Origin: Klebsormidium nitens
Taxonomy: Eukaryota > Plantae > Klebsormidiophyceae
Length of the DNA: 64,000 nt
Assembly (NCBI GenBank): GCA_000708835.1
Contig: DF237117.1
Span: 1-64,000, forward strand
Direction of reading: 5' to 3'
Shown here one piece after another: positions 167 to 53,900 of this stretch. Position 1 is the first letter of the stretch. Every line of letters starts with the position of its first letter. A program made the position numbers and the translations under genes. A model generated the notes under the pieces. The model was not told the DNA's origin. It did no database searches and saw only the letters and a program-made list of their open reading frames with translations.

Positions 167-266
167 CTGTCACGCTGTATGGGCTCGTTGCTGTGACGGC
201 TCGGCTACACGTGCCAGTAATGCCTCATGCTAGTTACTAGAGCTTTCCGCCATTAGCCGCCGATTA

Positions 267-282
267 GGGATTTTTTGGACTC
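267..282 (+). repeat. Left terminal inverted repeat
   Basis: GGGATTTTTTGGACTC; with the flanking ATTA the match to the reverse complement of 11987-12006 is 20/20. Confidence 0.85.
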
Positions 283-677
283 TCCGGCGAGCTGGATAAC
301 CTATTTGCCGGGCGGAAATTTCGGGGAGGTTGGCACCGTCCGAAACAAGGATCCTCATACTTTTAGGATCCTAAGATTGAACGGCCGATTGGCAATAGAC
401 TGAGCTCATCGACGGCCCGGATTCTTAGAGGCAGTTGTTCCGCGGTAGTCACAGGCTCGGACCCGTAATTCGGTTTGCCCACGCCGGTGACGTTCTTTGG
501 CAAGGCGGCAAAAATTTCCTGGTCGCCGGAGGCTAGGGACAGAAGACGAATCGCTGAGGTCGTTCCAGGCGACATGACCTTGACGCCATTCAAATTCAAG
601 CGATGGAGCCTAGATTCATTGCAATATCAACGCTCCTGTAGCCTTGCACTTCTTTCTTTAGGCTGGCGGCAAGCAAA

Positions 678-3287
678 ATGGCGTCTGCTCTCTCTGTGAA
701 ATCCTTTGAGGTTGCTCGAGGGCCAAAAAGCTTCATCGTATCAGTGGGCAGCGGAGTCAAGATCAAGGCTGCAAGAGGGGAAAAAGCAGGGGCATGGAAA
801 GGAGCCACCTTTTACATGTCTCGTGTCCTGGAGATCCTTGTGCGGAGGGGGAAAGTTCAGCTCACAGTGGAGCACCTCTACAAAAAGATAGAGCTTACAC
901 GAGATTTGGAGTTGAACGAGCTGCCCAAACAAGCCAAGGCAAATCAACTGTGGCCCAGTCCTTGCCAGGATACATATGATGTTGAAACAGTGCTAGATGT
1001 CTTCACAGTCTTTCATTACAAGACAATCGCCGCCTTATATCCTGGTCAGCTTCCAGCAGAGCTACTGAAAAGTGAAATCTATATGTATAATAGCCTCTAC
1101 AATCCCCTCCTAAAGAGCTTCTCCAAGGTCCCAAGTTTCCCTCCTGTTGATGCTCCTTATGAGTGGCCTTCTCTGGACAGCCACGTGTATGCTGGTTGTC
1201 TACTTACTTGGGCGTCTGAGATTCAGAAAAGCATGAGTACGACGCAGGGAGGCGGCCGTCAATCTATTAAAGTGTCCCTCCCTTTAGGTGGGCTGCCAGC
1301 AATAATGCAGCTCGGTTGGGAGCACCGGGCTGCCACAGCGTCCATTATCTTTGTTCCGCACAAGGCTGTTCTTGATGGGCTTCTTGGAAAGGGCTGGAAC
1401 GAGAAAGTCAACGGGCGAGGACTGGAAAGAGTTAAAGCGTGCATTGCATTTGAGAGCTTGAAGATCAGGTAAGCCTGCCATTGCGCAACCACCAAGCTTC
1501 TCTGCATTGGCAAATGCTTATGGCAATTCGGTGTGGCAGGCCTTGGTGGGGGCCAACTTGATTATTGAATGCTGCAGTACATGACTGGCCTGGGCCCCTT
1601 GCTTTCAATCTGCTCATTTTAGCAGATATGTTTGTAGTTTTCGCCAGTATCCATGCGTGCCATTCAAACCAATGTCTTGGGTGGAATCTGAGCTGCCGCT
1701 TGTATGTGACAGAGATGATGTTTTGAATTCCTATAGATTGTGTTTGCTGGAGGAAACTCAGCAGGAAAATGGCTCGTAGGCTCACACCGCCGATTTGAAT
1801 GCACATGCCTTCTCTCCTTGGGCTAAGCACCAGTTTGGAGTATCTCTAGCAATCAGCAAGAACAGCAGCTTTTCCTCAAGAGCGCTGCTGCACAGCAGTT
1901 TCGCTGAATGTCTTTTGCTTGTTGGTCCTTGCAGGTATCACTACGCACGGCAGTGCATTCTCATGACGTGGCACTACCAGCGCTTCATGTGGAATAGGAG
2001 GGAAGAGGAATGGATTGCCCTTGACCTGAACCCGCAGACTGTGTGTGAGTTGGACAGACTCTCGGTGCTCACCACTTTCAAACAATTCTTTATCCTTCAA
2101 TTCTGATTGCGTTTCTCGCTGAGAGATCAGGGTCTGTCTTTACAGACCAGCGCCATGAGCATGTTGCTTGATCCGTTTGGAATCTGGACATTGCCCAATT
2201 GGTATTGGTGTACTTTGGGAAAGCTGGTTATGGTTTTGTGGTTATTCTACAAGATTGCTCATCTAAGTGGACCTGGGCAGCTTAGTCGTTCGTAGAGTAC
2301 CTGAGAAATTGGTCAGGCATGGTTTCAAGTTGTAAGAACAGCCTTTCTAGAGTGCCACTCTTTCTATGCTCCGAGGGTGCAGGTCTGTATAGGGTTTTCA
2401 ATAAAGATTCAACATGTATCACAGAGTACAGACAGCAGCGGGAACTTGAAGTTCCAACCATGCCGTGCAAGTTCTGGCCACGCCGCGGAGTTTCTGTGAA
2501 GTGCTATAGTTGCTCGGATAGTAACCATGAATGCCCCTTTGTTGCGTCTGCAGCATTTGAACAGGAACATACTTGTTGTGCCGCCTGGCAACAATCACAG
2601 ATTCATTTCGAGAAGCAAAGTTGACGGGTCAGTTCGTGCTTGCTAACGAAAGTGCTCCTTCATGCAGTGCAACGCAAGGAGATTACCCTTCAAGTGTACC
2701 TTGATGGAGAAGAGCATCTTGGGGAGGTCAGAGTTGAGGCCAAAGACAACCTCTCCGATGTTCGGGTGGCCATCATCACCCAATTAGTCGGCATTGCTCC
2801 GCAGAAGTTCAATTTCTTCACCGAATATAAGCACGAGCAATTTTCCAAGGTAGGTTTCTTTTTCGTTGCAGGTTCAGGTCACCATTGATTCTCAAGTGCA
2901 CGGAAGCCAATTTGATCCAGCCTGTCCTCTTGCACACGTGGAAGGCTGTCTTGAACTTGTATTGCTGGTCCGCTTGACATTTGCAATCATTCAAATTTCG
3001 TAAGCCTGTATAGGGACAAAAGATTCATCTGCATTGACAAAAAGTCGTTCCTGACCCGCTTTCAAAAATACCTTTCGTAGGCTCTCGTTGGTAAAGCTGC
3101 CGCTTTCAAAGAAACAAACTGTTTTTTACAGATCCAGTCCCGGTTCGAGAAAAGGTACTCGGTGAAGAAGTTCCTTCTGGACGAAGACGATGGAGAGATC
3201 ATCATAGACAAGCAGGTAAATGGCACAATTGTACTCCGTCTGTTTCATCTGACAGATTTCAATCGCGTTCAACTTGCCCGTTTCTGA
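678..3287 (+). CDS. Transposon second gene, unknown function, with a C-terminal ubiquitin-like (beta-grasp) domain
   Basis: Exons 678-1468, 1935-2044, 2383-~2520, ~2668-2849, 3132-3287 (or spliced at 3215). Junctions at 1468/1935, 2044/2383 and 2849/3132 are GT-AG and phase-compatible; the exon 3/4 junction is uncertain. The C-terminus ITLQVYLDGEEHLGEVRVEAKDNLSDVRVAI...KFNFF has a beta-beta-alpha-beta ubiquitin-like pattern (by eye). Confidence 0.65.
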
Positions 3288-4360
3288 ATCGACGACAGCA
3301 TCCTACAGTCGATTTCTGGTTGAAAGTGAATTGCACCGTGCATGCGCAGCTTCTGAGATGTCTCTCTCTGCAAATTCTGTTCTTATCTGATCACAGCGGC
3401 CCTCTAAACCATTTATTCATTGTAGAGATCAGCGCAATTGGTTCGTGTGCAGGACCCCCCTCCAACGAATTTTGACGACTTGATGAACATCTTATGATTC
3501 CTCGAAGGCATTGCTTAGCAACACTTGGCTGCGGTGTGTCTATTGTGTATCGAATCTGTAAATATATGGTCCTTGTCGGGAGCCGTGTTAAAAGCCTTCT
3601 GGCAAATGGGAACGAACGTGCGGTGCGCTGGTATGAAAACTGGAAGCAGCGCAGCATGCATGACTTGCCTACAACTTCATATCATAATACTTTGTGCGTA
3701 CCGTCATAAATCTGAGATGATGATATAAAAGTTGTTACGTTAGCCTCCGGAAAAGGTGGATTGGATGTCAACAATTGCACGGTGCATCACTCGAACATTT
3801 CAATTCATGCATGACTCGCAGATATGGCTGATTTGAGAGGCCGCGCGGACGCGTTCGCGTCGAGATTGTTTCTCAAGGACTAGCTGCCATCCTATGAATC
3901 ATTGCGAGTACTTTCATCAATTGTCGAAGCCTTGATGCCACATGCATATATTGGATTTACGTAATTTTAGAAACAGGACCGGATAATTGACTCGAGATAT
4001 GTGGCCGCTGGTCAATCATATTAGCTTGCATGGCATGAGCGGCAAGGCGAGCTAGCCGATGAGTCGATCCGAGATATCGAACGAACCGACTGCATGAGAA
4101 AATGATTGAAAAACCTCGCCATACTAGTTTCCATGAGGAAAAAAGCGCGCCTCCCCCCCCGGTGACATGGACTCAGGGGGCGTTTAAAACGCCCCCCCTA
4201 GTTCCCTCCCTTCCCCTTCCCAAGCTTGCCCCGACCGTTCGGAATCATCCTCCTGACGAACCCGTCACAAGCGCACCCGGCCAGGATGCACGAGTAACGA
4301 CGAGCGAACCCGTGACGTCGACCCCACTTGTACCCGCGTACAGTCGTCCCTCCATCCCCT

Positions 4361-4444
4361 CGGCTGTGCTCGGGATCGAACCGAGAACAAACCGCTTAGT
4401 ATTATTGAAATACTAGCGGCTTGCTTGCCAAACTCTACACAGCC
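4361..4444 (-). ncRNA. tRNA-like element (pseudo-tRNA or head of a tRNA-derived Pol III unit/SINE), anticodon ambiguous (AGT-like)
   Basis: Minus strand: perfect 7-bp acceptor stem GGCTGTG/CACAGCC and perfect T-arm CTCGG-TTCGATC-CCGAG (B box). The anticodon hairpin CCGCT-AGTATT...AATACT-A-AGCGG is extended by an intron-sized insert, and the D-arm is degenerate. A T6 run lies downstream at 4139-4144. Confidence 0.55.
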
Positions 4445-4772
4445 ACAACTATCGGATACAATTTGGCATAATGCCATGATGCCAGTGCGGCTCGATTTGA
4501 CATATACCATACAATGAATTAATATTTCATGCACGTAATAATCGAAGGTACTGGATTGACTCCACGCGTGGAACTCTGTTGCATCCCAGGCTTTGTGCGG
4601 GCAAACAAAGCAGGCAAGCGCCCGCACTTGCAGTTCAAATATATATCGAGCTACACCTCTATAAATACACCCCTATAAATAACGACTCAAGTTGCTGCAA
4701 GCTATTCAAATTAGTTGCTACCTACATTTGACGAAGGGTCTCAGTCGAACCGCCTCAACCTTATGTACAGAG

Positions 4773-7700
4773 TCACTCGGACATCATTCTCAGTTGCTCA
4801 ATGAGCTCTTCTTTCTCCCTGTCTCTAATTCGCTCTTCCTCCAACAAACGGATCTCGTTTGCATCGAGCGCTTCCTCCCATGCATCAAGCTTTTCTGCCC
4901 GAGCCTCGATCTCTGCCGCATCCATGCAGTCCCCGTCCAGCTCTTCTTCTTCGCTGTCCCCCTCCATCTCGTCCGCGCGGCCTCCCGCATTGTCGGCATC
5001 GTCTGCGCCCCGGTCTGCATCGCCGTCCTCGGCCAAACCGTCACCATTGTCCGGATCCGGAGCATCACCTGCGGGCACACGCCGAACCCATCTCTTTCCG
5101 ACCCGATCGCAACTGGCGCGGAAGGCGGCACCGCCCTCAGCAGCATCCGAGCCTTTCCACGCCTGGCGCCTCCCCTCGGTCAGTGCTAAGCGCGCCTCCT
5201 TAGCCGCCTTCTTGGCAGCCTCTTGAGCTCGCCTCTGCTGCCGATGGTGGCGGTGGCGGTGCTCGAACTGGACGAGCTGAGCCAGCGGGTTGATCTTGTC
5301 GAAACCCCCACCGTGTTGCGTGTGATGGATGTACTCCCACTTCCATCGCCAGTTGGACTTCTCAATCCCCTGCAGACGCAACACGATTTGAGACACGAGC
5401 TTCACAGAAAATCTGAACCAAGTCTCCACAGCGGCCATGCCAGATATGCGACACTAAGCCTAATGACTTTTGCTCTCCTTCCGTTGGTCGAAGCAATGCG
5501 ACTTTGTTGAACCTGTCCGTAACTAGTGGTAATGGCTTTCATAGAAATGATGGAAACTTGGACCCCAAAGGGATCCGAATAAAGCCCAACATCTGACTCC
5601 AGAGTCCCTGAAAGCTACCACCAGCATCCTCAACCTAAGGTTCAAGCTAGAAACTGATCTCTCCCAACTCAGAACCGTACGCAGCATAGCACATACCTGT
5701 CCGTTCCAGGCGGCCAGACTTCCGTTTCCCAGGTGCCGGTTGTTGTTTATGAACCACCCGCCGTTGGTATACAGCGTAACCTGCACATGAAATGGAAGTG
5801 AGCACTCGAAAGATGGCCTCAAAACTAAGCGAAGGCTGCGCAGCCTAAACGATGCTGCACAATCTGGGTAGTTGACTGGCTTTAAGAGCATAAGATCTCA
5901 TGAACAGCCTCCTTGACTAGATTCTTAAACCTCTTGAGAGCGCCACGTCCAGAAACGTCTTTGAAGACGTCTCAAACAATGTGATCAGCGGCAAAACTTA
6001 CTGTACACTGAGCGGCCAAGTAAAGAAAAGCACCACGAAAGTTCAAGATTCACACAACCACGAGCGTTTCAGCTTGGAACGGAATGCCAAACTCACCATA
6101 TAGTGGGTCACCCCGGCCTCGCCAAAACAGTCCGTGAATTTCTCCAGGTACGTGTCGACCGCCTTGTCGTGCATGCCCGGATCGCTGCCCGTCGCAGCGC
6201 TGTACACGGGGTCACGCAAGAACGGCACGTACTTGTCGAAGGCCAACCACATCAGCACCATCTCCGCCCGCTTGTCAGCGTCCGGCTCGATGTTGACCAG
6301 CTGCGCCCAGACCTTCTGGGCAGTGATTCTCGCCACTGTGCCGCCGTTCATGCTGATCTTCTGCGGCTTGTTCCCCTTGCCCGCACGTGGATCCTGCACG
6401 ATCGTGCAGTGGCCCCCATGCACTCCGATGCTGCTGAGCACCGTCTCAATCCCTCGTAAGAGCCCGTCCCTCACCGCTGCCTTCTCGGGGGTGCTGCAGT
6501 CCATATTCCAGTAGCGTTGCACTTGTCGATGGAGGTTAACCTCTGCGAGGCGAGTGACTGCGTGGAGGGGGTCTAGGTGCCACCGCTCAAGGGGGATGGG
6601 GAGCAGACACCTGAACCCTGGGTCCTTGACGTCCCGGTCCGGTTTCTGACTTTGCTGCCCGTTACGCACTCCCCCAGGCCACTGCCCCTTCACCCGTTCG
6701 CGGACGCTGTAAATGTTGGGCTTGGTCGCATTCGCCCCGGGCTTGACATTGAAAAGAATTTTCAACGTCTTCAAATCGCACGACCCATGCCACTCCACCT
6801 GAAACTTCCCAACGCCCGGAACAACCAACGGCTCTCCCCGCTCATGCCGTTCGATTGCAGCATACAACATCGAGACCTCCTCACATGCCTCCCTGCCCAC
6901 GTCTAACCCCTTCCTGGGAACCCCCAGCGAGTTACGACCAGCCTCGACAGCCCGCTCCACATCTCTTACCCCCCCCCCTTCCCCAGCAAACCCGCCATCG
7001 GAGTACTCGCCTTGTTCCAAGTCCGTTCGTGCACTGGCTGCGGCCTCCCGAATTCTGCGCACCACCCCGTCACCAACCTCTGCATTTACCCCCCGACTCT
7101 CCCTCCCCTCGTCCTCCCTCCCTCTGATAGACTCTGCGGTCCCCCCCTCGGTTTCAGACGCTCCTTGCCCACCTTCTTGCCCCGCGACCTCGCCTCCAGT
7201 TCTCTCCGGGGCACGGCCTTCCTGCGTTGGCCTCCTCGCAGAAGCAGGGAGCAGACCCCTCCGTTGTCGCTTTCGAGCTGGCTGTAGTGGTGGATCCGCT
7301 CCTTCGGCGTCCACGGGCTGGCGCTCCCCTTCAGCAGCACCTGGCGGCAATGTCGAGGGTTCGGCTTCCGCTTGCGCCATCTCTGACGCCCGGGTTGGCG
7401 CGACGCGCAGTTTGGGGGGCACTCCGAGATGCCACTCAAGGGTGGCGCGGTCCTCCTTCTGGACCTGGAAAAATGAAAGCCCGTTTACGAATGCACGAAC
7501 TACTGAGATTTGCCCCTTGTATACGTTTGACTTCAATGGAGAGAACGTCAACCCTGCAGAGTTTCGAGGGGAAGGAACGCCACCACCATGGCATGCTCGC
7601 CCAGGGCATGCTCGGCCCCTCGCCGAAAGGACTTCTTTGCAGGGGGTAAAGTCTACTCCCAGAATCTGCCCCCAGATTTGAAGAACAAGATACCCCTCTT

Positions 7701-10700
7701 GCTTGGAACGGATGCTTCACAAACGTTCTAATTTCCTGGCCAACATCACTTACAAGGGGGTAGAGTTTGCCCCAAGAACCTAAACAGCCTAACCCTCCTA
7801 CCGGAAAGAAAGTGAAGAAGCAGAAAGAAAGAACGCAACATGTCTGACTAATGTGACTAATGTGCATACTGTCAACTTGAAACCTCTTGTCAGGCTCTAT
7901 CCCCAAAACGAACAAAACGAATAGGAGGGGCAATCAGTCTGTGCGAGCAGCTGCGCAAGTGCTGCTTGAAGGACAGGGAGACTTTATGCTGCTAGGGAGA
8001 CTTTATGCTGGTGGGGTTGCCCTTACAAGAAGCAAAGAAGAAGACGAGCTCGTCAAGTATGCACATCCTAGCATACACATTCAGGCACATCCTATGTGCT
8101 GCAGCTTACCTGAAAGGCTGTGAGCGTGTAGGTATCAAACTCGGACTGGATCTTGTACCCAGAAGTCTCGAGAAGCCTGGGGTCTTGTGCACCGTTCATC
8201 CCCACAACAACGCCTCTCTCAAGCTTGACGCCATTGCCAAACGCCGCCTCGTCCATCTTGTAGCACACAATCAGCTTCGGATGTTCTGAATACAAGCAAC
8301 GGAAAAAATGAGCATGTTGAAAACTGAATCTATTATGGTTGCAACAACACAGCAGAGCAAGACCGAGCACTCAGCCAATGGACACAAGAATAGAGCAGGA
8401 CTGAGCATCATTTGAGCCAATGGGCACCAGAATCCCGGCATAACAGCAAACCTCTGCCAAGATGCTCTGCCCTAGTCCACAAGTAAACCAGGCTTATCAT
8501 TGATTCAGTGCCACCACCAGATTCAGACACTTACCCACTGGATTGAGACCAAGATCCTTCACAATCTGCCGGAGGACGTTGTCAACGGGCACCCATATAT
8601 TGATGGGCATCTCCTCTGTAACCCACTTGCCCGCTTCATCTTTGACCTCCCGAGTGCCATGCCTCTCCACCAGCTGCCCTAATTCGTCCATAACCTGCAC
8701 GGCAGTCAATTGCGTACTATATTGCCACCCCTACATCAAACCAACCATCACTTGGACAGATCTGAGAGCAGGTGCAGGGTACAAGTATCGATGACTTTAT
8801 CAAGAAGGGCTCGGCAGCAGCAAATTGCTGGAATTATCGGGACTGGTCACAAGCAAATTAGCTTCTTTACGTTGGGACTACAGGATGGTTTCTCAAGTGG
8901 CTCTCCTCCAGAAGGCAAGTTGAAATCATAGATAAATCATTGGCCTCATTGGGAAAGACACAGTCACAGTATCTTGCTGAATGCAATCCGAGTGAAACTT
9001 GCTGCAAATGTATCGTTGCATTACCTGGCTGTTGATTTCCCTGCGCTTTGCAGCCACATGCGCAGGCTTGGGCAGGAGCGTGGGCTTGAAACCGGCACTC
9101 TTGGCTGCAGTAAAGAGCTCTTTGGCAACGCCGCTGTAAACCAAGAAGAGATTATGAGGGATCCAGATTATAAGAGATTGAGATATTCAGATTGAGAAGA
9201 TCATGAGAGATCTCAGTGCTAAGAAACTCTGGTGGACAAGGAACCCCAGAAAGTGGCCCAAAACTAAAGACCCAACTAGGAAGACAGATCCAAAACTCTG
9301 GTAACGAGCCAGTGCCTGCAATCTTCTAAACCTCGATGCACAACCAGCGGCAATCAGGTCGCACAAAGCCAAAGAGAAGTTGCGTCAAGACTTGAGCCAT
9401 CAGAAAGAACTTACCCATAAGTGCGGACTGTTCCCCCGGCCAGCTCAACCCCTGCAAGCGCGGCGGCCGTGGTAAGGTTGGCGCTGATTTTGTCCAGCGC
9501 TTCTTGTTGGACGTCCTTGCGAATGCCGTTGAACTTCGTGTTCTCCAGGGCTGCCTTGAGCTCCGTCCGAGTCGCCCACGTACCCAACCATTTTCCAAAG
9601 CGCTCTTGCTCCTCCCGGGTCCCCGAGAGAGGAAGCCTCCTCTCAGACAGCCGGTTATAGGCCTGGATGCGTGCCGTCTGCCTAGGCGCGAGAAGCATCC
9701 TGACAGAGAAGATATCAAGAGCGTATCACATATACAATGCATTTACACTTTGCTCAAATTGTCAACTAGACCTCAGCTTTTGCCTCAAAGCAAATCCTAT
9801 TGATTTGAAAGACAATATCTTGTTGCTATCTGAAGCTTGGTGCATTGTCTTCCTGCACACACAACCAGGACATCTTTGCCGGCTTCTCATGTTGACAAAA
9901 ATATGCTTTGCTTCTGATTCAACTGAAACAAAAACTCTATCATCTGCTACTATCATTCTGGTTCGACAATTCACTCTGATACGACACTTCAGAAGCAACC
10001 TCTTGACCGCAGCTGACGTTCAACAGCTTCCGATGCAGGCTTCATGATTTGAAAGTTGTTTTTAAGGCACAGAAGTCAGCCAGTACAGTATGATTCTAAG
10101 TTGCTTTAGGTCATGCATTTGAGCAGCCCTCAGCAATTACTCCACCTGGAAGATTCCAAATCGTTAGGGCTTTACCTTGCTTCCCTTCCACGGGCCATTG
10201 CAGGTCCACCATCAACGCGGAGATCATACACATCCTTGCTGTCCCGGCGGCGCAATTTGCCACCATTCCGCTGCAGCTTATTATTCCTTTTCCTGAGGAC
10301 CCTGTTCGTATGCCGCAAGTTACGATTTGTCCTCTTGCTCTCTTCATGGCGAGTGCCGAGCGCGTCTAGCTTCAACTTCAGCTTCGATGCTTCTGCATTG
10401 GCCTTAGCACACTTTGCAATAGTTGATTCTACTCTTTTCAGGTGCACTGCCTCTCGCCGCTCAACTTGAGCAACTCGTTGCTCCTGCTGCTCTACCTTCC
10501 TAAACAACTGGGCAATCGTTGGCTGAACCTGCTTGATGGCATCTACCTCTGTTTGCAGACCTTCAGCGCGATTGTGTAGGGCCCAGGAATAGGAATGGAA
10601 TCCATTGTTGTATCCATTGCCTAGGAACTCAAGGTACTGGGTCACGTTCTTGATCTCTGGATGCGAACCTGTTTCAGGGTTGACAGGGAGGGACTTGCCG

Positions 10701-11059
10701 TCAGCAAACACAGCCAATTGTTTTGTGCTTTTGCTTTGCCTAAGAGCTTCTAGCTGTTCTAGAGACAGTGCTTTAACATCTACAGCTGGCTTGAACCAAT
10801 CCTTCAGGGATGTTTGAAACTTGTAGGGTGGTTCGGCACCCTTCCTCGGCGTTGGGGTAGCAACTGGATTGGGAACACGAAATGGAGAAGGAGTTGTTGG
10901 AGAAAGGCTTGCAGAATGTTTTGGAACTGGGGAAAGAGGGACGCTAGCAGGTCTCCTAACAACAGCAGGACTGTGTAAGGTGTTTGGATCAAGCGTTGAA
11001 AGAAAACCAGCGGCTGGTTGCAAATTTCTAGCAATATTGAACATACTAGGGAATGCCAT
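4773..11059 (-). CDS. RAG1/Transib-like DDE transposase, 8 exons, ~1214 aa
   Basis: Exons 11059-10176, 9681-9415, 9133-9025, 8694-8535, 8285-8110, 7464-6097, 5780-5697, 5369-4773. All introns are GT-AG and phase-compatible; total 3645 nt, no internal stop. Motifs: LTTAAALAGVELAGGTVRTY (cf. RAG1 [20 protein letters not shown]), IVCYKMD (first D, 8251-8253), CDLK (second D, 6775-6777), DPLH (cf. DALH), VTHYM (cf. ITNYF), GSLAAWNGQ|GIE (cf. GSIGAWASEGNE; catalytic E at 5361-5363). Confidence 0.85.
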
Positions 11060-11986
11060 TTTGGAAAGGCATGGTCGGAGCTACGCAGCAGAAATTAACC
11101 CCTGATCCTGCTTTCAGCATCCACCAGCACAGAAGGCCGCCAGAATAAAGACAAGGTGAAGCTGTGAAGTTCCTGTATAGCTCTGTTTGTCAAAGGCCTG
11201 GAAAGAAACCCGAGACCCCTAAAGATTCAAAAAGTCAACAGAAGAGGCAGTTACACGATCCAAGGGCCGGGATCGAAGCAAAAAGATTGAACGAACGGGA
11301 GAGCACGGTTTCCCGCGCGGAAAAGCTTACCTCTGCATATCCTGCAACTTAGGCCAACTCGCGTGCTTGAGCTTTGTGCATCAGCATAATACAAGGTTCT
11401 CTTCCCTAATCTTCCTTCACAGAACGACTAGCAATCAGCCGAGCAGCCTTTGCAATCCGTATGGGGCCAAGCAGCTTCCTGCTTCAGCTTGTTGCTGGCA
11501 CAGATGTGCTCTGCTGCCCAAACAATGGTGGTCAAATAGCTCCTCTGATCATCGTGATCAATGCCTGCAATTGGCAGCCTTCTTTCAACTTCAGCCTCAG
11601 GGTTCAGGCCTTGCCAGGATCAGGCAGACATTATTGATTTTTTATTTTCTGTTGATTACTCTATGGCCTGCCTGGCACAGTGGGCAAAGCCTAGGTATTA
11701 CCTAATGAATATTTTGAAAGGCGAAATGGCATGCGCAACCTCGTCTACAAGGCCCCTCACACCCTGCATGTCTTAGCCAGGGCCAAACTGGCTTAGAGCA
11801 GGGACAGCCTTCTACCGGTCTGCTGACGGAAACAGGGCCCGGCACTGTACGGACTCTAAGAGCTTGGTCAAAACTCGGCACCTGATTGGTTACACGGGCT
11901 CCGATATCGTCCTACGTGGCAGTTGAAGTCAAGCCGCCGGGAAAAGCGGTGCACAGGTCCCCCACTGAGTTACACGGCTTGATTCC

Positions 11987-12002
11987 GAGTCCAAAAAATC
12001 CC
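11987..12002 (-). repeat. Right terminal inverted repeat
   Basis: GAGTCCAAAAAATCCC followed by TAAT; exact reverse complement of the left end. Confidence 0.85.
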
Positions 12003-12015
12003 TAATTAGTATATA

Positions 12016-12514
12016 NNNNNNNNNNNNNNNNNNNNNNNNNNNNNNNNNNNNNNNNNNNNNNNNNNNNNNNNNNNNNNNNNNNNNNNNNNNNNNNNNNNNN
12101 NNNNNNNNNNNNNNNNNNNNNNNNNNNNNNNNNNNNNNNNNNNNNNNNNNNNNNNNNNNNNNNNNNNNNNNNNNNNNNNNNNNNNNNNNNNNNNNNNNNN
12201 NNNNNNNNNNNNNNNNNNNNNNNNNNNNNNNNNNNNNNNNNNNNNNNNNNNNNNNNNNNNNNNNNNNNNNNNNNNNNNNNNNNNNNNNNNNNNNNNNNNN
12301 NNNNNNNNNNNNNNNNNNNNNNNNNNNNNNNNNNNNNNNNNNNNNNNNNNNNNNNNNNNNNNNNNNNNNNNNNNNNNNNNNNNNNNNNNNNNNNNNNNNN
12401 NNNNNNNNNNNNNNNNNNNNNNNNNNNNNNNNNNNNNNNNNNNNNNNNNNNNNNNNNNNNNNNNNNNNNNNNNNNNNNNNNNNNNNNNNNNNNNNNNNNN
12501 NNNNNNNNNNNNNN
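12016..12514. other. Assembly gap
   Basis: Run of N. Confidence 1.
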
Positions 12515-12515
12515 T

Positions 12516-12646
12516 GGATCATGGATGATGTGTGTATGCCGTATGAGTGACCTGGAATGACGTATCATTTTCATTTTCGCCGTTAGCCTGAGCGCCTCAG
12601 TCTGTCCACCGACATGATATCGCATCGACATAAGACCGCATGACAG
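12516..12646 (+). repeat. 131-bp direct repeat, copy 2
   Basis: Identical to 36-166; begins right after the N gap, so it may extend into the gap. Confidence 0.95.
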
Positions 12647-41820: not shown

Positions 41821-44800
41821 ATGCTGCATTGTCAAGTACGATCAGGAGTCCAGTCAATTCAGCTGCATTGCCAGTACCATAGCTCTGTCCAACAAGGAGA
41901 GTTGCAGCAAGGGCGTCTTTATGCCCAATGGAGGAATCTCGGACATGTGAACCAGACCTTTGCTCAGGCAAGGCTTGGTTCTCAGTCAAAAGGAGGCGGC
42001 ACAGACACTTTGGGCAGGCAATGGGCCCAATCACCTGACGGCCTTAGCGGACGGTCACTGCATCCTTGGCATGGGGTCTCTAGATTGGGAGATCAGGTGC
42101 TCAAAGGAAGTGGGGGTAGAAGACAGCGTTCGCCTTTTAGTGCCAGTGCAAATGGTGGTACAAAGTCAGAACATCTAGACAGTCCACCGCTAGAACCGCC
42201 CTCTGCAGGCAGCCACAGTCCTTCAGGCGCCCCTCCGCAGACAAAACCACTCAGCTCGCACAGAGAACCTCTAGCCAGCACAAAAGTCAAGCCTCAGCCT
42301 GAGGACAGCCGGGAAGCTTTAGACCTCCGTGCCAAGCTCCTGCCTCATATCAAACAGCAGTGGCGCTTGATTGCAAGGGCCTGGGCTTGCACCCTCATTT
42401 CATTAGCGGCTCTCTTGCTGGTCATTCCCCGAATAGGCAAGCTCTCTTCTCTGTTGTCAAATGGAGATCTGCCAGGCGTGGTTCGCATGGCGGGGGTAAC
42501 GATGGGGCTCATCACCATGCGCTGCGCAGCTCAGTACGGCCAGGCAAGTGGGGCGCTTGTTTGCTTTCGAAAGTTTCTTGTTTGATGAGGTTTGGAACAG
42601 TATCAGGTTAATAAAGAAGAGCCCCCAATCAATCGCTTATGGTGTCTGCCTCCAGGAAGCTTGTGCACCCCAGATGTGTAAGCCCCCTTCGGCATCTTGA
42701 GCACTCAGGAAAGGTCCTCCCAACTATATGCGCGCTGTTGTAAGGAGATCAGAAGCAACTCTAGTCCTATGTTACAAAACGCCTGAGCTTTTTTCTGAGG
42801 ATCACAGACACTGAAAATTTTTGACCCTGCGCAAGCAGGGACAGTCTGTGAGTGCTTGTATCAGCATTTTAAAGACTATGCAAACGGTTGAACCTTTTGA
42901 AACATCGTTTTGGTCATAGTCAACACATTGTAAGATGACTCATGCAGCGTCGATGTCCAAGTTGAACAGTATAACCAACGCTGATGTAACACTCCGAAAG
43001 TCCGAAACTCAGATCCTACACGTGTGTTTACCTTGTAAATCCAATCCACCCTCTCAGAGCCTTTGACACTTGCCCTTTTCTACAGGACGTATGGCTGTGG
43101 GAAGCGGCCCTCCACATCACGAGCAGCGTCCGCAAGCAGGTCTACGGACACGTCCAACTTTTGGGGCTTTCATACTTCGAGGGGGCCGGAGACACTGCGG
43201 CGGGAGACACGGCGTATCGGTTGACGGCGGAGGCGGACCAAATGGGAGCCATGGTGTTTGCATTTCTTCAGGTTAGGGGCGGTCTCGAGTACACACTTTT
43301 TTGGAAGCTACGATGATGGAGTAGTGGTGTGGAGCCATTTCCTTATCGGATATGTCTGGGACAGCTTTGGAAACGGTTTCAGAAGAACGTCCATATTTCA
43401 ATGTCCTGTTTGGCGCACGTTTTTGCCTGCAAGGTCGAGATCCGACAAGCTGGCGGCTTTACCTTCGTAGTACGTACACTTTGAAATAAGCCCAAGCTCA
43501 AACGGAAGTCGCAGTCTAGACTGGCCCGAATCAGACGTGTTGCTTGTGCTTCGACCTTTGAAAGGGAAACGAAATCGACTCCGCGAAGGCACTAGTGTTG
43601 CGGAGCACTTTTGCTGCGGACTATCTTTGTGACTAAGATTAGATTGTTCTGGGCCTGTATGACGGGAATGCGCTGATGTCATCGCAACATCAGCGGGAAG
43701 GTCGCAAGAGCAGACAAATCGGTGGCCCCAATGAACACTACAAATGCAACTACCATCAGTGTGGCAATCTTAAACGGACAGAACTTAAAACGCTCCTCGT
43801 ACTATGCAAAACCAATCTGACTGTTCTTATCAAACTCTGCACGTTCTAATAAAACGTGCAGCCGCTTTTTTCGAGCGCTTTTCAGCTGGTCGCGATGCGG
43901 GCCACTAAGCTCCCTTCAACTTCTCAAGCCGTCAAGAGTTTGGAACTATTGACTCAAAGCCCTGAAACAGGGATTCCAAAACCCTGGAACAAGGGATTTT
44001 AAAATCTCAACCGCAGATCTCGCCTTTTTGAAACTAAAGCTTCACGATCTTCTGTGCAGCGTCTCGTGCCAAGGCTCTTCAGCTCGTCGCAATGCTCGCC
44101 AAAATGCTCCCCCAAATTCTTCAAGCCATCAAACTCCTAAGCTCCCAAAAAACCCAAAATATGAATTCCTCCCATCTTCTATGCAGCGTCTCATCTCGAG
44201 CGCTCTTCAGCTCGTCGCAATGCTCGCCAAAATGCTCCCCCTGAAACCCGTAGGCCATCAAACCCCTAGCATCCAGAATCCTTGAAAATAGAAGTCGGCC
44301 ATCGTCTGTGCAGCGTCTCATTCCGAGCGCTCCTCAACTGGTCGCAATGCTCGCCGAAATGCTCCCCCTAAAAATCGTAGGCCATCAAACCCCTAGGATC
44401 CAAAATCCTCGAGAATAGAAGTCGTCCACCGTCTGTGCAGCGTCTCATTCCGAGCGCTCTTCAGCTCGTCGCAATGCTCGCCAAGATGCTCGTGCTGAGC
44501 CCCTTCCTGAGCGGAGCCACGTTGGCGGTGGCGCCGCTGATGTCACTCCTGATCGCGCGCCTGGGGGACCGCGTGAGGCGCCTCTCGCGCAGCAGCCAAG
44601 ACCAAGTCGCTGAACTGTCGGCGCATGTCAACGAGGTGGGTTGTTGTTTTTTGAGAAAAATTTGGGTCCGCATCTCTGTGAAGATGAAGTTTGGAGAACC
44701 AATTGAGCAGTCAAGAAAGCGTATCAATTGCTTCGGCAATATCCGATTCGATGCCCCCTAGAGCTAAAGACTTCAACCACCTTGAAACAGTGACGTGATT

Positions 44801-50965: not shown

Positions 50966-53900
50966 TTAGTAGTAAGCACCAGGGATCTGGCCGTTAAGCT
51001 GGCAGTAGACCATTTTGCAGAAGTTGGGGTCCGACGCCGTCACAGGGTCCGCCGTTGGGCACGTGTAGCCCGTGGGGCAGCAAAACACAACCTGGACACG
51101 TGGCAAAGAAGCATTCGTCAGTAGCTGCAAAGCAACATCTGTGTCTTCGAAAACATTCCGACGGCCGTCCGAAGTCATCAAGGGTGCAAGACGCACGTTC
51201 GGATGCGCTTTGAGTAAGATCTGCTTTATCGAGGCCTCTTATCATTGTCGCGCATTCTTCAACTTTGACCTCGCCCCGCGACAGAGCACCGATCTAAGAC
51301 GTCGACATTATACAATGGAGCGCGACAAATCATCTCGCGCCCCTTTACTGTAGCGAACCCCCGAAGCTTCACTGGAGCGGAGCGCCAATGCATCAGAAAG
51401 GGGACTCCCCCACCGAGGGGATGCGGATCACCACAGAAACGAGAAGGAAAGAAGGAACAGACACTCACTTGCAAGCACGACGTGCACTGGTTCAGCGCCT
51501 GCCCCTGCCTGTCGAACCCGCACACCCCATTCTCCGGCTGAATGGGCTCCATCGTCGCGCTCGGAATGGTGTTCGCGGCAGTCTGCGGCCGGGACGCAAA
51601 CGTCGGAGAGGGGGTCAGGAGAGTAACCGGGGTCGGGTCGGGGGAAGCTCCGGGGACGGGGTCGGTGGTAACAAGAGACGAAGTGGACTGGAGAGTGGTC
51701 GACTGGCTGGCCGCGCAGACAGCGATCGGGCCCGGGGGGGGGCACGCGGAGTCGGCGCAGCAAGCGAAGGAGCTGCCGAAGGCGTTGTAGCAAGTGTAGG
51801 GGAGGGAGGACATTGGGTCGCAGCTGCGGGTGGGAAAAGGGGACGAAAGGGATTGTTAGCGTAGTGCACTGAAAAACTTCTGTTTTAAAGTCGAGCGTGT
51901 TCCCGTTTGTCATCTCTAGTCAGGTGGGTGCTTGAGGTACAAAGAAGTCTCGAGAAAGTAGGGATCAGGCGAGTTGTGAGCGCAAAAAAGACCCCTTCGT
52001 ACTTCGAACGTGGGCCGAGAACACAACCTTCGAAAGCTCAGATTCACATTCACCGAGAGGGAGGCAGGCTCTGCAGATTTGCACTTCCGGTTCGACAGTC
52101 TCATAACAAGCAGCTTTGTCTTGGTTGGTCGGACTTTGAGCGCGCTCCTGAGGAACGTCACTTACACATGGCCGGAGGTGGCTGCGTAGGTTGCCACCGG
52201 CGCAGGGCCGGCAGTGACAGTTGGCGCAGCGGTGGTGACAGCTGGCGGGGCAGTAGTGACAGCTGGCGCCGCAGTGGTTGAGACAGGGATTCCGGCCACA
52301 GTAGGCGCCGGGGTGGGGACAGGGTCGCTCGCGCCGGTGGGGGCCGGGAGCGGGGCAGCAGAAGGATCCCCCACGACCGCACTGAACGTCAACGGGATGG
52401 AAGCGCTTCCCGTGGGGGTGGGGGTAGGGGTCTCCGTCGTCGTCGGGGTAGGGGTCAACAACACCACGGGGGTAGGGGTAGGGGTATCCGTGCCCGCAGC
52501 GAGAACGGTTGGGGTCGGGGTAGGAGCATCGGTGGGGGCCAGTGCGGGGGCAGCCGAGGGGTCCGCCGCCGTCGTTGCGGAGAGCTTCGGAAGCGCCGTC
52601 GTCAAAGTCGGGGTCGGGGTAGGGGTGTCGGTCGACGTAGGGGCGGGGGTGGTCCCAGCGGGAGTAGGGGTGGGGGTATCCGTAACCGCGGGGGCCGGAG
52701 CGACAACGGTTGGGGTCGGTGTAGGGGCGTCAGTCGGGGCCGTCGCGGGAACTGACGCCGTTGTTGCAGAGAGCTTCGGAAGCGTCGTGGTCGAGGNNNN
52801 NNNNNNNNNNNNNNNNNNNNNNNNNNNNNNNNNNNNNNNNNNNNNNNNNNNNNNNNNNNNNNNNNNNNNNNNNNNNNNNNNNNNNNNNNNNNNNNNNNNN
52901 NNNNNNNNNNNNNNNNNNNNNNNNNNNNNNNNNNNNNNNNNNNNNNNNNNNNNNNNNNNNNNNNNNNNNNNNNNNNNNNNNNNNNNNNNNNNNNNNNNNN
53001 NNNNNNNNNNNNNNNNNNNNNNNNNNNNNNNNNNNNNNNNNNNNNNNNNNNNNNNNNNNNNNNNNNNNNNNNNNNNNNNNNNNNNNNNNNNNNNNNNNNN
53101 NNNNNNNNNNNNNNNNNNNNNNNNNNNNNNNNNNNNNNNNNNNNNNNNNNNNNNNNNNNNNNNNNNNNNNNNNNNNNNNNNNNNNNNNNNNNNNNNNNNN
53201 NNNNNNNNNNNNNNNNNNNNNNNNNNNNNNNNNNNNNNNNNNNNNNNNNNNNNNNNNNNNNNNNNNNNNNNNNNNNNNNNNNNNNNNNNNNNNNNNNNNN
53301 NNNNNNNNNNNNNNNNNNNNNNNNNNNNNNNNNNNNNNNNNNNNNNNNNNNNNNNNNNNNNNNNNNNNNNNNNNNNNNNNNNNNNNNNNNNNNNNNNNNN
53401 NNNNNNNNNNNNNNNNNNNNNNNNNNNNNNNNNNNNNNNNNNNNNNNNNNNNNNNNNNNNNNNNNNNNNNNNNNNNNNNNNNNNNNNNNNNNNNNNNNNN
53501 NNNNNNNNNNNNNNNNNNNNNNNNNNNNNNNNNNNNNNNNNNNNNNNNNNNNNNNNNNNNNNNNNNNNNNNNNNNNNNNNNNNNNNNNNNNNNNNNNNNN
53601 NNNNNNNNNNNNNNNNNNNNNNNNNNNNNNNNNNNNNNNNNNNNNNNNNNNNNNNNNNNNNNNNNNNNNNNNNNNNNNNNNNNNNNNNNNGTGGGGGTAG
53701 GGGTTTCGGTTGGCGTTGGGGTGGGGGTGGGAGTAGGGGTTTCGGTTGGCGTAGGGGTGGGGGTTGGAGTTGGGGTGTCGGTTGGCGTGGGGGTAGGGGC
53801 GTCGGTCGCGGCAGCGGCTTTGTTGGCAGCGGCGCCGGGTCCCAACGGGGAGGGAGGGGGGTTGTTCCCAGGCATGAACGACGCGCACTGGGCCTGTGTG

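Follow-up and report, generated by a model that had tools for sequence, protein, structure and literature searches.

The stretch analysed here, called the window below, comprises the first 64,000 nucleotides of scaffold DF237117.1 of Klebsormidium nitens (GCA_000708835.1, forward strand), and the element in question, at positions 263-12006, adjoins the very start of this scaffold. Within one pair of 20-nucleotide terminal inverted repeats (TIRs), the element carries two convergent spliced genes, KFL_001680010 on the plus strand, referred to as gene 2, and KFL_001680020 on the minus strand, which encodes the transposase; their stops lie at about 3497 and 4773, some 1.3 kb apart. An earlier note on this DNA had described a plus-strand spliced gene and a minus-strand transposase converging inside one TIR pair, and this layout is confirmed, the model of gene 2 ending at 3497. 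The features of the locus are listed below.

263-282, plus strand: left TIR, ATTAGGGATTTTTTGGACTC, on the gene 2 side, complementary at 20 of 20 positions to 11987-12006.
364-394, plus strand: subterminal block TAGGATCCTAAGATTGAACGGCCGATTGGCA, 101 nucleotides inside the left terminus, containing a 10-nucleotide palindrome.
678-3497, plus strand: gene 2 (KFL_001680010), the orphan partner gene, from the GenBank range and exon mapping.
About 678-1469, 1936-2043, 2670-2849, 3132-3215 and 3453-3494 plus the stop, plus strand: exons of gene 2.
4773-11059, minus strand: transposase gene (KFL_001680020), extended at its 5' end, about 1220 residues, from the GenBank range, exon mapping and homology.
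About 11059-10176, 9699-9414, 9132-9019, 8688-8536, 8286-8107, 7461-6094, 5777-5697 and 5369-4776, with the stop at 4775-4773, minus strand: the eight exons of the transposase, mapped from the protein model.
8251-8253, minus strand: codon of the putative first catalytic Asp, D204 of the GenBank protein P0102, in the motif KMDE; K-x-D-E is conserved in homologues.
6775-6777, minus strand: codon of the putative second catalytic Asp, D481, in the motif WHGSCDLKTLK (D-[LM]-K block).
5361-5363, minus strand: codon of the putative catalytic Glu, E738, in the motif QGIEKSN, where P0010, P0023, P0033 and P0041 have AMEKSH.
11987-12006, minus strand: right TIR, on the transposase side, followed by 9 nucleotides (TAGTATATA) up to the assembly gap.
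12016-12514, no strand: assembly gap of 499 N, outside the element, which begins 9 nucleotides past the right arm, hides the right flank and is followed by a copy of a 131-nucleotide repeat at 12516-12646.

The GenBank model of the transposase gene, at 4773-10198 on the minus strand, is a "hypothetical protein" of 933 residues (P0102). The frame of its first exon remains open for 287 codons past the annotated start, up to an ATG at 11059, and this extension is conserved in two of the relatives described below, L026 (E 1.6e-33) and L025 (E 1.7e-10), so that the range 11059-4773, already proposed in the earlier note, describes the gene better than that of GenBank, whose start is probably placed 287 codons too late. 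The upstream part, at 10198-11059, is coiled-coil and basic. The borders of intron 1 are GT-AG, and homology to the gene was found exon by exon in L001, L004, L024, L025, L026, L028 and L030. These relatives belong to a multi-copy family (L001, L002, L004 and L024-L031) found on contigs of the Joint Genome Institute metagenomes 3300060284 and 3300060285 and of one Logan assembly.

Neither the open reading frames of the transposase nor 18 relatives match any Pfam family, RAG1 included, at E values up to 10, and a sequence search of the PDB gave no match, with the single sequence or with a profile. Only 64 relatives were retrieved when 1.84 billion representative proteins were searched exhaustively with HMMER, and no Pfam domain was recognised in any of them. 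Almost all are nameless pieces of metagenomes or of assembled read archives; a handful of short ones from these clusters bear eukaryotic transcriptome labels, of Prorocentrum and Pyramimonas. An AlphaFold2 model of P0102, built from 78 sequences, has a predicted local distance difference test score (pLDDT) above 90 for most residues between 450 and 720. When this model was compared with the PDB by Foldseek, the top 48 matches were all chains of RAG1, of amphioxus BbRAGL or of the Helicoverpa Transib. The VIA-align superposition of residues 80-786 of the model on residues 459-1008 of RAG1 gave a Z of 20.9 over 453 residues, with a root-mean-square deviation (rmsd) of 3.8 Å, followed by BbRAGL (Z 19.6), HzTransib (Z 18.6, 421 aligned residues, rmsd 4.5) and, as the next, unrelated fold, the P element transposase (Z 9.6); the sequence identity with RAG1 is 13-16%. 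The modelled protein holds the whole RAG1 core architecture, beyond the RNase H domain alone, in agreement with the RAG1-like character that the earlier note had attributed to it.

The alignment of the family contains the blocks K-x-D-E, G-D-L-K-T-L-K...C-x-Y-C, R-V-H-x-C-T-L-H-A, K-P-S-M-N-G and V-T-H-Y-M...Q-x-x-E-K-S-H, which we take to align with D600, D708, C727/C730, the MNGNFARK helix, H937/H942 and E962 of mouse RAG1. The KxDE, GDLK and EKS[HN] motifs are kept throughout the family, the D-[LM]-K block being the most conserved. D204, D481 and E738 would form the catalytic triad, and from its spacing and the fold alignment D204 would be the counterpart of RAG1 D600. The distance from D481 to E738 is 257 residues, close to the 254 from D708 to E962 in RAG1; the distance from D204 to D481 is 277 residues and comes near that of RAG1 once an insert of about 170 residues is excluded. 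This insert, which lies between the first and second Asp (P0102 about 274-446; about 7400-6880, minus strand), is of low complexity, rich in Gly, Glu, Ala and Arg, and mostly of low confidence in the model; the inserts of the relatives are shorter or different. The ratio of nonsynonymous to synonymous substitution rates (dN/dS) of the transposase is 0.2 between L024 and L028, on few changes; the values between K. nitens and the relatives were mis-registered or saturated and were left unused.

The limits of the element are marked by its TIRs. The perfect 19-mer of the TIR occurs at two sites only in the 64 kb when up to 3 mismatches are allowed, 0.03 being expected by chance, and the homology between the two ends is limited to the 20 nucleotides, nothing further in being alike. 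The left arm starts with ATTAGGGA, at the place equivalent to the ends of the relatives. An identity of 95.8% between L002 and L028 extends over 2,074 nucleotides and ends abruptly at cATTAGAGGAG, 374 nucleotides upstream of the gene 2 start, beyond which a reverse transcriptase is found on one contig and an integrase on the other; the resemblance of L027, which is 73% identical to both, starts at exactly the same point. It is exactly there, where L002, L028 and L027 begin to resemble one another, that the ATTAG(A)GGA start recurs. The subterminal block at 364-394 (TAGGATCCTA..TTGAACGGCCGATTGGC) is 87% identical over 31 nucleotides to L002 6006-6036, at an equal offset of 101 nucleotides from the terminus, and is also present in L028 and L027; it is a candidate transposase-binding or promoter element. 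Since the left arm and the subterminal block match the boundary of the relatives, the TIR marks the place where a mobile unit ends, with gene 2 inside that unit.

The GenBank model of gene 2 is a "hypothetical protein" of 322 residues (P0100). The open reading frame 678-1469 is colinear with the metagenomic protein P0101 over its full length (44% identity, 100% coverage), so that an intron annotated within exon 1, at 1047-1289, is probably an error; it would remove 80 conserved residues. Conservation extends to exons 2 and 3 in L002, L027 and L028, and the dN/dS of 0.06-0.07 between L027 and L028/L002 indicates that gene 2 is under purifying selection. Downstream of exon 2, blocks at L028 8713-11353 and L027 12594-17628 are conserved between the two element lineages, some of them weakly matching the C-terminal exons found in K. 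nitens, and gene 2 of the relatives may be longer, with more exons.

Two protein searches, covering 5.8 billion proteins, returned only P0100 itself, P0101 and P0114, and a further homologue was found by translation in L004 (27% identity, same exon end). Each of the four homologues of gene 2 either adjoins the same ATTAG(A)GGA terminus or has a related transposase upstream of it, and none was found outside such elements among the 5.8 billion proteins or, by profile, in any fetched locus. A metagenome scan for gene 2 gave no relative. Gene 2 and its homologues match no Pfam family, and neither Kelch nor PHD; a weak, sub-threshold match to BAH (E 0.054) appears in one of the five homologues. The PDB sequence and profile search for gene 2 found no relative, and the structure prediction of exon 1, made from five sequences, had a pLDDT of 36 and no usable fold. 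The proposal of the earlier note that this partner fills the RAG2 slot therefore finds no support.

The pairing of the two genes is not confined to K. nitens. The genes located in four relatives, two of which have gene 2, are as follows.

L028, 183-2166, plus strand: transposase.
L028, 3535-4425, minus strand: kinase.
L028, 5644-5937, minus strand: gene X.
L028, 13298-12045, minus strand: gene 2.
L004, 4-3927, plus strand: transposase; the contig cuts the element at both ends.
L004, 5225-6151, minus strand: kinase.
L004, 7191-7604, minus strand: gene X.
L004, 11693-11181, minus strand: gene 2.
L030, 12982-13779: kinase.
L030, 15103-15417: gene X.
L001, 12429-13298: kinase, in an inverted block with gene X.
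L001, 10867-11208: gene X, in the same inverted block.

In L028, a gap-free stretch of 18.9 kb in an 85-kb contig, and in L004, gene 2 and the transposase converge, gene 2 being at the far end, as in K. nitens. The transposases of the three elements are 43-47% identical to one another, that of L004 being about 43-45% identical to the other two, and gene 2 is thereby linked to this transposase lineage in three divergent elements. The recurrence of gene 2 in divergent relatives, together with the purifying selection acting on it, shows that it is not a one-off capture, the outcome by which the earlier note would have given up its proposal; its homologues, moreover, are found only in such elements. 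What is new here is this recurrence of the partner gene in divergent metagenomic relatives, together with the conservation of the terminus.

A kinase (Pfam Pkinase) and a conserved gene X lie between the transposase and gene 2 in the relatives; neither is found in the 64-kb window. L030 and L031 end short of the position expected for gene 2, and a transposase-based metagenome scan gave 18 short contigs with gene 2 in none, these contigs being too short to tell. The similarity boundary of L030 and L031, which begins TGTTGGATTC, may be a nested insertion. Small, partly inverted repeats resembling miniature inverted-repeat transposable elements are found in both orientations at many contig ends of 3300060284 and in transposase introns. 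They were located at the following positions.

L001, 1-125: small repeat.
L002, 7955-8358: small repeat.
L026, 10283-10681 and 10883-11221: small repeats.
L027, 17633-17754: small repeat.
L028, 7-127: small repeat.
L030, 1-124: small repeat.

It is because of these small repeats at the contig ends that no contig holds a complete element. One of them, a segment S of 125-400 nucleotides present in both orientations at the contig ends of L001, L002, L026 and L030, had made L002 look like an internally deleted copy in which gene 2 was joined to the 5' region of the transposase; this was rejected, the shared segment being a separate repeat.

We propose that 263-12006 is probably one structurally intact, low-copy cut-and-paste transposon, belonging to a rare and unnamed DDE lineage with a RAG1/Transib core, in which gene 2 is an element-specific accessory. 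That a real transposon with a RAG1-fold transposase lies at this place is highly probable, and gene 2 is quite likely to be a component conserved in this lineage of elements. The transposase would bind the terminal repeats of 16-20 nucleotides, and probably subterminal motifs as well. The element would then be excised by DDE chemistry, as by RAG1 and Transib, and reinserted with a short duplication, perhaps of 2 bp. The product of gene 2 would be an accessory protein specific to the element and needed by it, rather than passenger cargo, and could act as a cofactor, as a targeting or chromatin-binding factor, or as a regulator. The requirement of gene 2 for transposition is a tentative proposition, to which we give somewhat less than an even chance. 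It is unlikely to be a direct, RAG2-like cofactor of cleavage, and we consider it similarly improbable that it is an obligate cofactor which binds the transposase and, by means of a BAH-like reader module, links cleavage to chromatin.

Several observations weigh against the proposed reading. The terminus on the transposase side was not found in L025, L026, L030 and L031 by motif, mismatch scan or local alignment, so that a TIR pair around both genes is seen in the K. nitens copy only. The relatives carry other genes between the pair, so that the description as a two-gene element fits the K. nitens version only. Furthermore, L001 has the transposase, gene X and the kinase, the latter two reversed, and lacks gene 2 over 8.6 kb downstream of its transposase. 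The co-occurrence of gene 2 with the transposase in one orientation, which the earlier note had named as a check, is accordingly seen in L028 and L004 and is missing over this distance in L001.

These last observations lead to the alternative that gene 2, like the kinase and gene X, is passenger cargo, captured once by the ancestor of a sub-lineage and kept for the benefit of the element or of the host, for instance against silencing, without a role in transposition. The presence of both the kinase and gene X in L028, L004, L030 and L001, the absence of gene 2 from those 8.6 kb of L001 and from the short contigs that bear distant transposase relatives, and the known existence of CMCT transposons with genes foreign to transposition, such as TET/JBP dioxygenases (PMC12730594), all speak for it. 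On the other hand, the minimal element of K. nitens has retained gene 2 while the kinase and gene X were lost or never present, gene 2 always stands opposite the transposase end and convergent with it in the three elements that have it, no cellular homologue that could have been the source of a capture exists among the 5.8 billion proteins, and the constraint on gene 2 is strong (dN/dS about 0.07). We regard passenger cargo as a possible explanation, on the unlikely side.

It is more doubtful still that the K. nitens pair is a domesticated or fossil single-copy locus, in which genes of transposon origin have been retained by the host. For each of the two genes K. nitens yielded a single protein, and mobility in its genome is thus presumptive; this search covered annotated proteins only, and unannotated copies would escape it. 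The transposase of K. nitens also lacks the C-x2-C pair of zinc ligands, which makes its activity uncertain: the family consensus has CIYC and HxCTLH, and the K. nitens copy keeps H547-x4-H552 and has N-I-Y-S in place of C-x2-C. This loss is, however, common to its closest relatives P0001, P0103 and L028/L024, which are multi-copy, and is therefore a trait of the lineage rather than a sign of decay. Perfect TIRs, matching over all 20 positions, would moreover be unexpected in a fossil, and both genes are intact.

The same alternative draws on the lack of a clear target-site duplication. If the ends are ATTAG, no duplication is seen between the flanks ..GCCGCCG and TAGTATATA.. of this one copy with its 9-nucleotide right flank, and, within the same limit, a 5-bp duplication is not seen either, the left flank ending ..CGCCG and the right one beginning TAGTA... 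It is possible that the outermost 2 or 4 nucleotides of the 20-nucleotide TIR are a 2-bp duplication, the ends being read as AT/TAGGGA... or TA/GGGATT..., since AT and TA are self-complementary. ATTA precedes G(A)GGA in all five ends, so that ATTA is either part of the element or the mark of a highly specific target. The base before ATTAG is C in the three ends of the relatives, and G and A at the two ends of the K. nitens element.

Finally, a chance match or an assembly artefact that makes a TIR pair out of mere neighbours, as might be suspected from the scaffold end, the right arm 9 nucleotides from a gap and the exact 131-nucleotide repeat flanking the region, is hardly credible in view of the 0.03 matches expected even with 3 mismatches, of a left arm opening with the ATTAG(A)GGA at which likeness starts in three independent copies from another organism, of the subterminal block conserved at an equal offset, and of the same gene pair recurring on gap-free contigs.

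The assembly around the element calls for some caution. The 131-nucleotide direct repeat (36-166 and 12516-12646) lies on both sides of the element, its second copy directly after the gap. It was considered as an empty-site allele and rejected: the copies diverge at 166/167, about 100 nucleotides outside the left arm and not at the TIR, and are therefore uninformative on the insertion site. Most likely this is a dispersed repeat, unrelated to the element, where the assembly was broken; order and orientation are thereby left unsecured for the first 12 kb of the scaffold. Elsewhere in the window, a degenerate, G-rich array of the GGGGT type at 52398-53821 straddles a second gap (52797-53690), in a stretch where the GC skew is 0.32, and a tandem array of 127-nucleotide units lies at 44028-44552, about 8 kb upstream of it.

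The RAG1-RAG2 pair is the classical example of a two-protein transposase turned immune recombinase. On the question of how an enzyme of the RAG1 type becomes dependent on a second protein, the lineage described here offers a natural comparison, with the same enzyme architecture, the same convergent layout and an unrelated partner that was retained as the two proteins diverged to 25-45% identity. Should this partner be needed for transposition, the RAG1 fold would be one that recruits cofactors repeatedly, and the lineage would provide a tractable non-animal system; were the cofactor of BAH type, it would be an independent and convergent two-component recombinase of the RAG1-RAG2 type, in the green lineage and in other protists. 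If the partner is cargo, the element would be a further CMCT-clade transposon with several genes, mainly of use for annotating the genomes of green algae and protists, in which both proteins are currently labelled "hypothetical".

Among the known systems, the ProtoRAG/RAGL elements (BbRAGL, PDB 6b40; AanRAGL of Aureococcus, PMC9435367) share with the K. nitens element the RAG1 core fold of the transposase and the presence of a second, non-transposase gene, convergent and within one TIR pair. Unlike their partner gene, gene 2 has no Kelch or PHD signature at the sequence level, and its conserved exon 1, of 264 residues, seems short for a six-bladed propeller. The transposase, for its part, is only 13-16% identical to RAG1 and has no Pfam RAG1 match, and the ends begin ATTAGGG, with no CAC heptamer, neither a heptamer/nonamer layout nor a 5-bp duplication being seen. 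Transib elements, which have one gene, CAC..GTG ends resembling recombination signal sequences and 5-bp duplications (see also PMC9435367), have in common with the K. nitens element the DDE transposase fold (HzTransib, PDB 6pqx/6pqn; Z 18.6 over 421 residues), the model being slightly closer to RAG1 (453 against 421 aligned residues). They differ from it by their single gene, by their 5-bp duplications, by their ends, which are ATTAGGGATTTT in K. nitens and cATTAGAGGAG in the relatives instead of 5'-CAC...GTG-3', and by the lack of any sequence match of the K. nitens transposase to the RAG1 core, in Pfam at E up to 10 or by PDB profile search. Tao et al. 2022 (PMC9435367) reported plant proteins resembling Transib, and from the alga Aureococcus a RAGL element; Klebsormidium is absent from their tables.

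The argument of the earlier note, according to which Transib has one gene and a two-gene element is hence an analogue of ProtoRAG, is too narrow: the motifs point to the wider CMCT clade, in which second genes are usual (PMC12730594). This clade unites EnSpm/CACTA, Mirage, Chapaev, Transib, Plavaka and ESTA, as well as Lanisha (Kojima 2025, PMC12730594) and is characterised by 5'-CA..TG-3' termini and duplications of 2-5 bp; a TET/JBP dioxygenase is the second gene in several of its lineages, among them ESTA, whose transposases are similar to RAG1 according to HHpred and produce TA duplications (PMC12730594). The family consensus, with CIYC and HxCTLH, agrees with the CMCT motif definition, the K. 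nitens copy being without the C-x2-C pair, and the K. nitens element has a second gene, as is common in the clade. As for the ends, those of the relatives (cATTAG) could fit the 5'-CA start, those of K. nitens have no CA start, and a 2-bp duplication of AT or TA, to be set beside the TA duplications of ESTA, is one possible reading of the latter.

CACTA elements carry TnpA as their second gene, and gene 2 is related neither to TnpA nor to TET/JBP. Unlike CACTA, Plavaka and KDZ, the K. nitens transposase has no Pfam match (Transposase_21, DUF4218 and others) at E up to 10, and the element does not end in CACTA, as do EnSpm/CACTA elements, which have a TnpD-type transposase and 3-bp duplications. 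Lanisha (GenBank MT647524), described from the moss Ceratodon, a streptophyte (PMC8245031), comes from the host lineage nearest to K. nitens. In conclusion, since the CMCT motifs are present and the ends, the duplication and the partner are not those of Transib or ProtoRAG, the element is assigned to a CMCT-type lineage; the best fit is an apparently undescribed CMCT-clade lineage of RAG1-fold transposons with a conserved partner of its own, and not a plant ProtoRAG.

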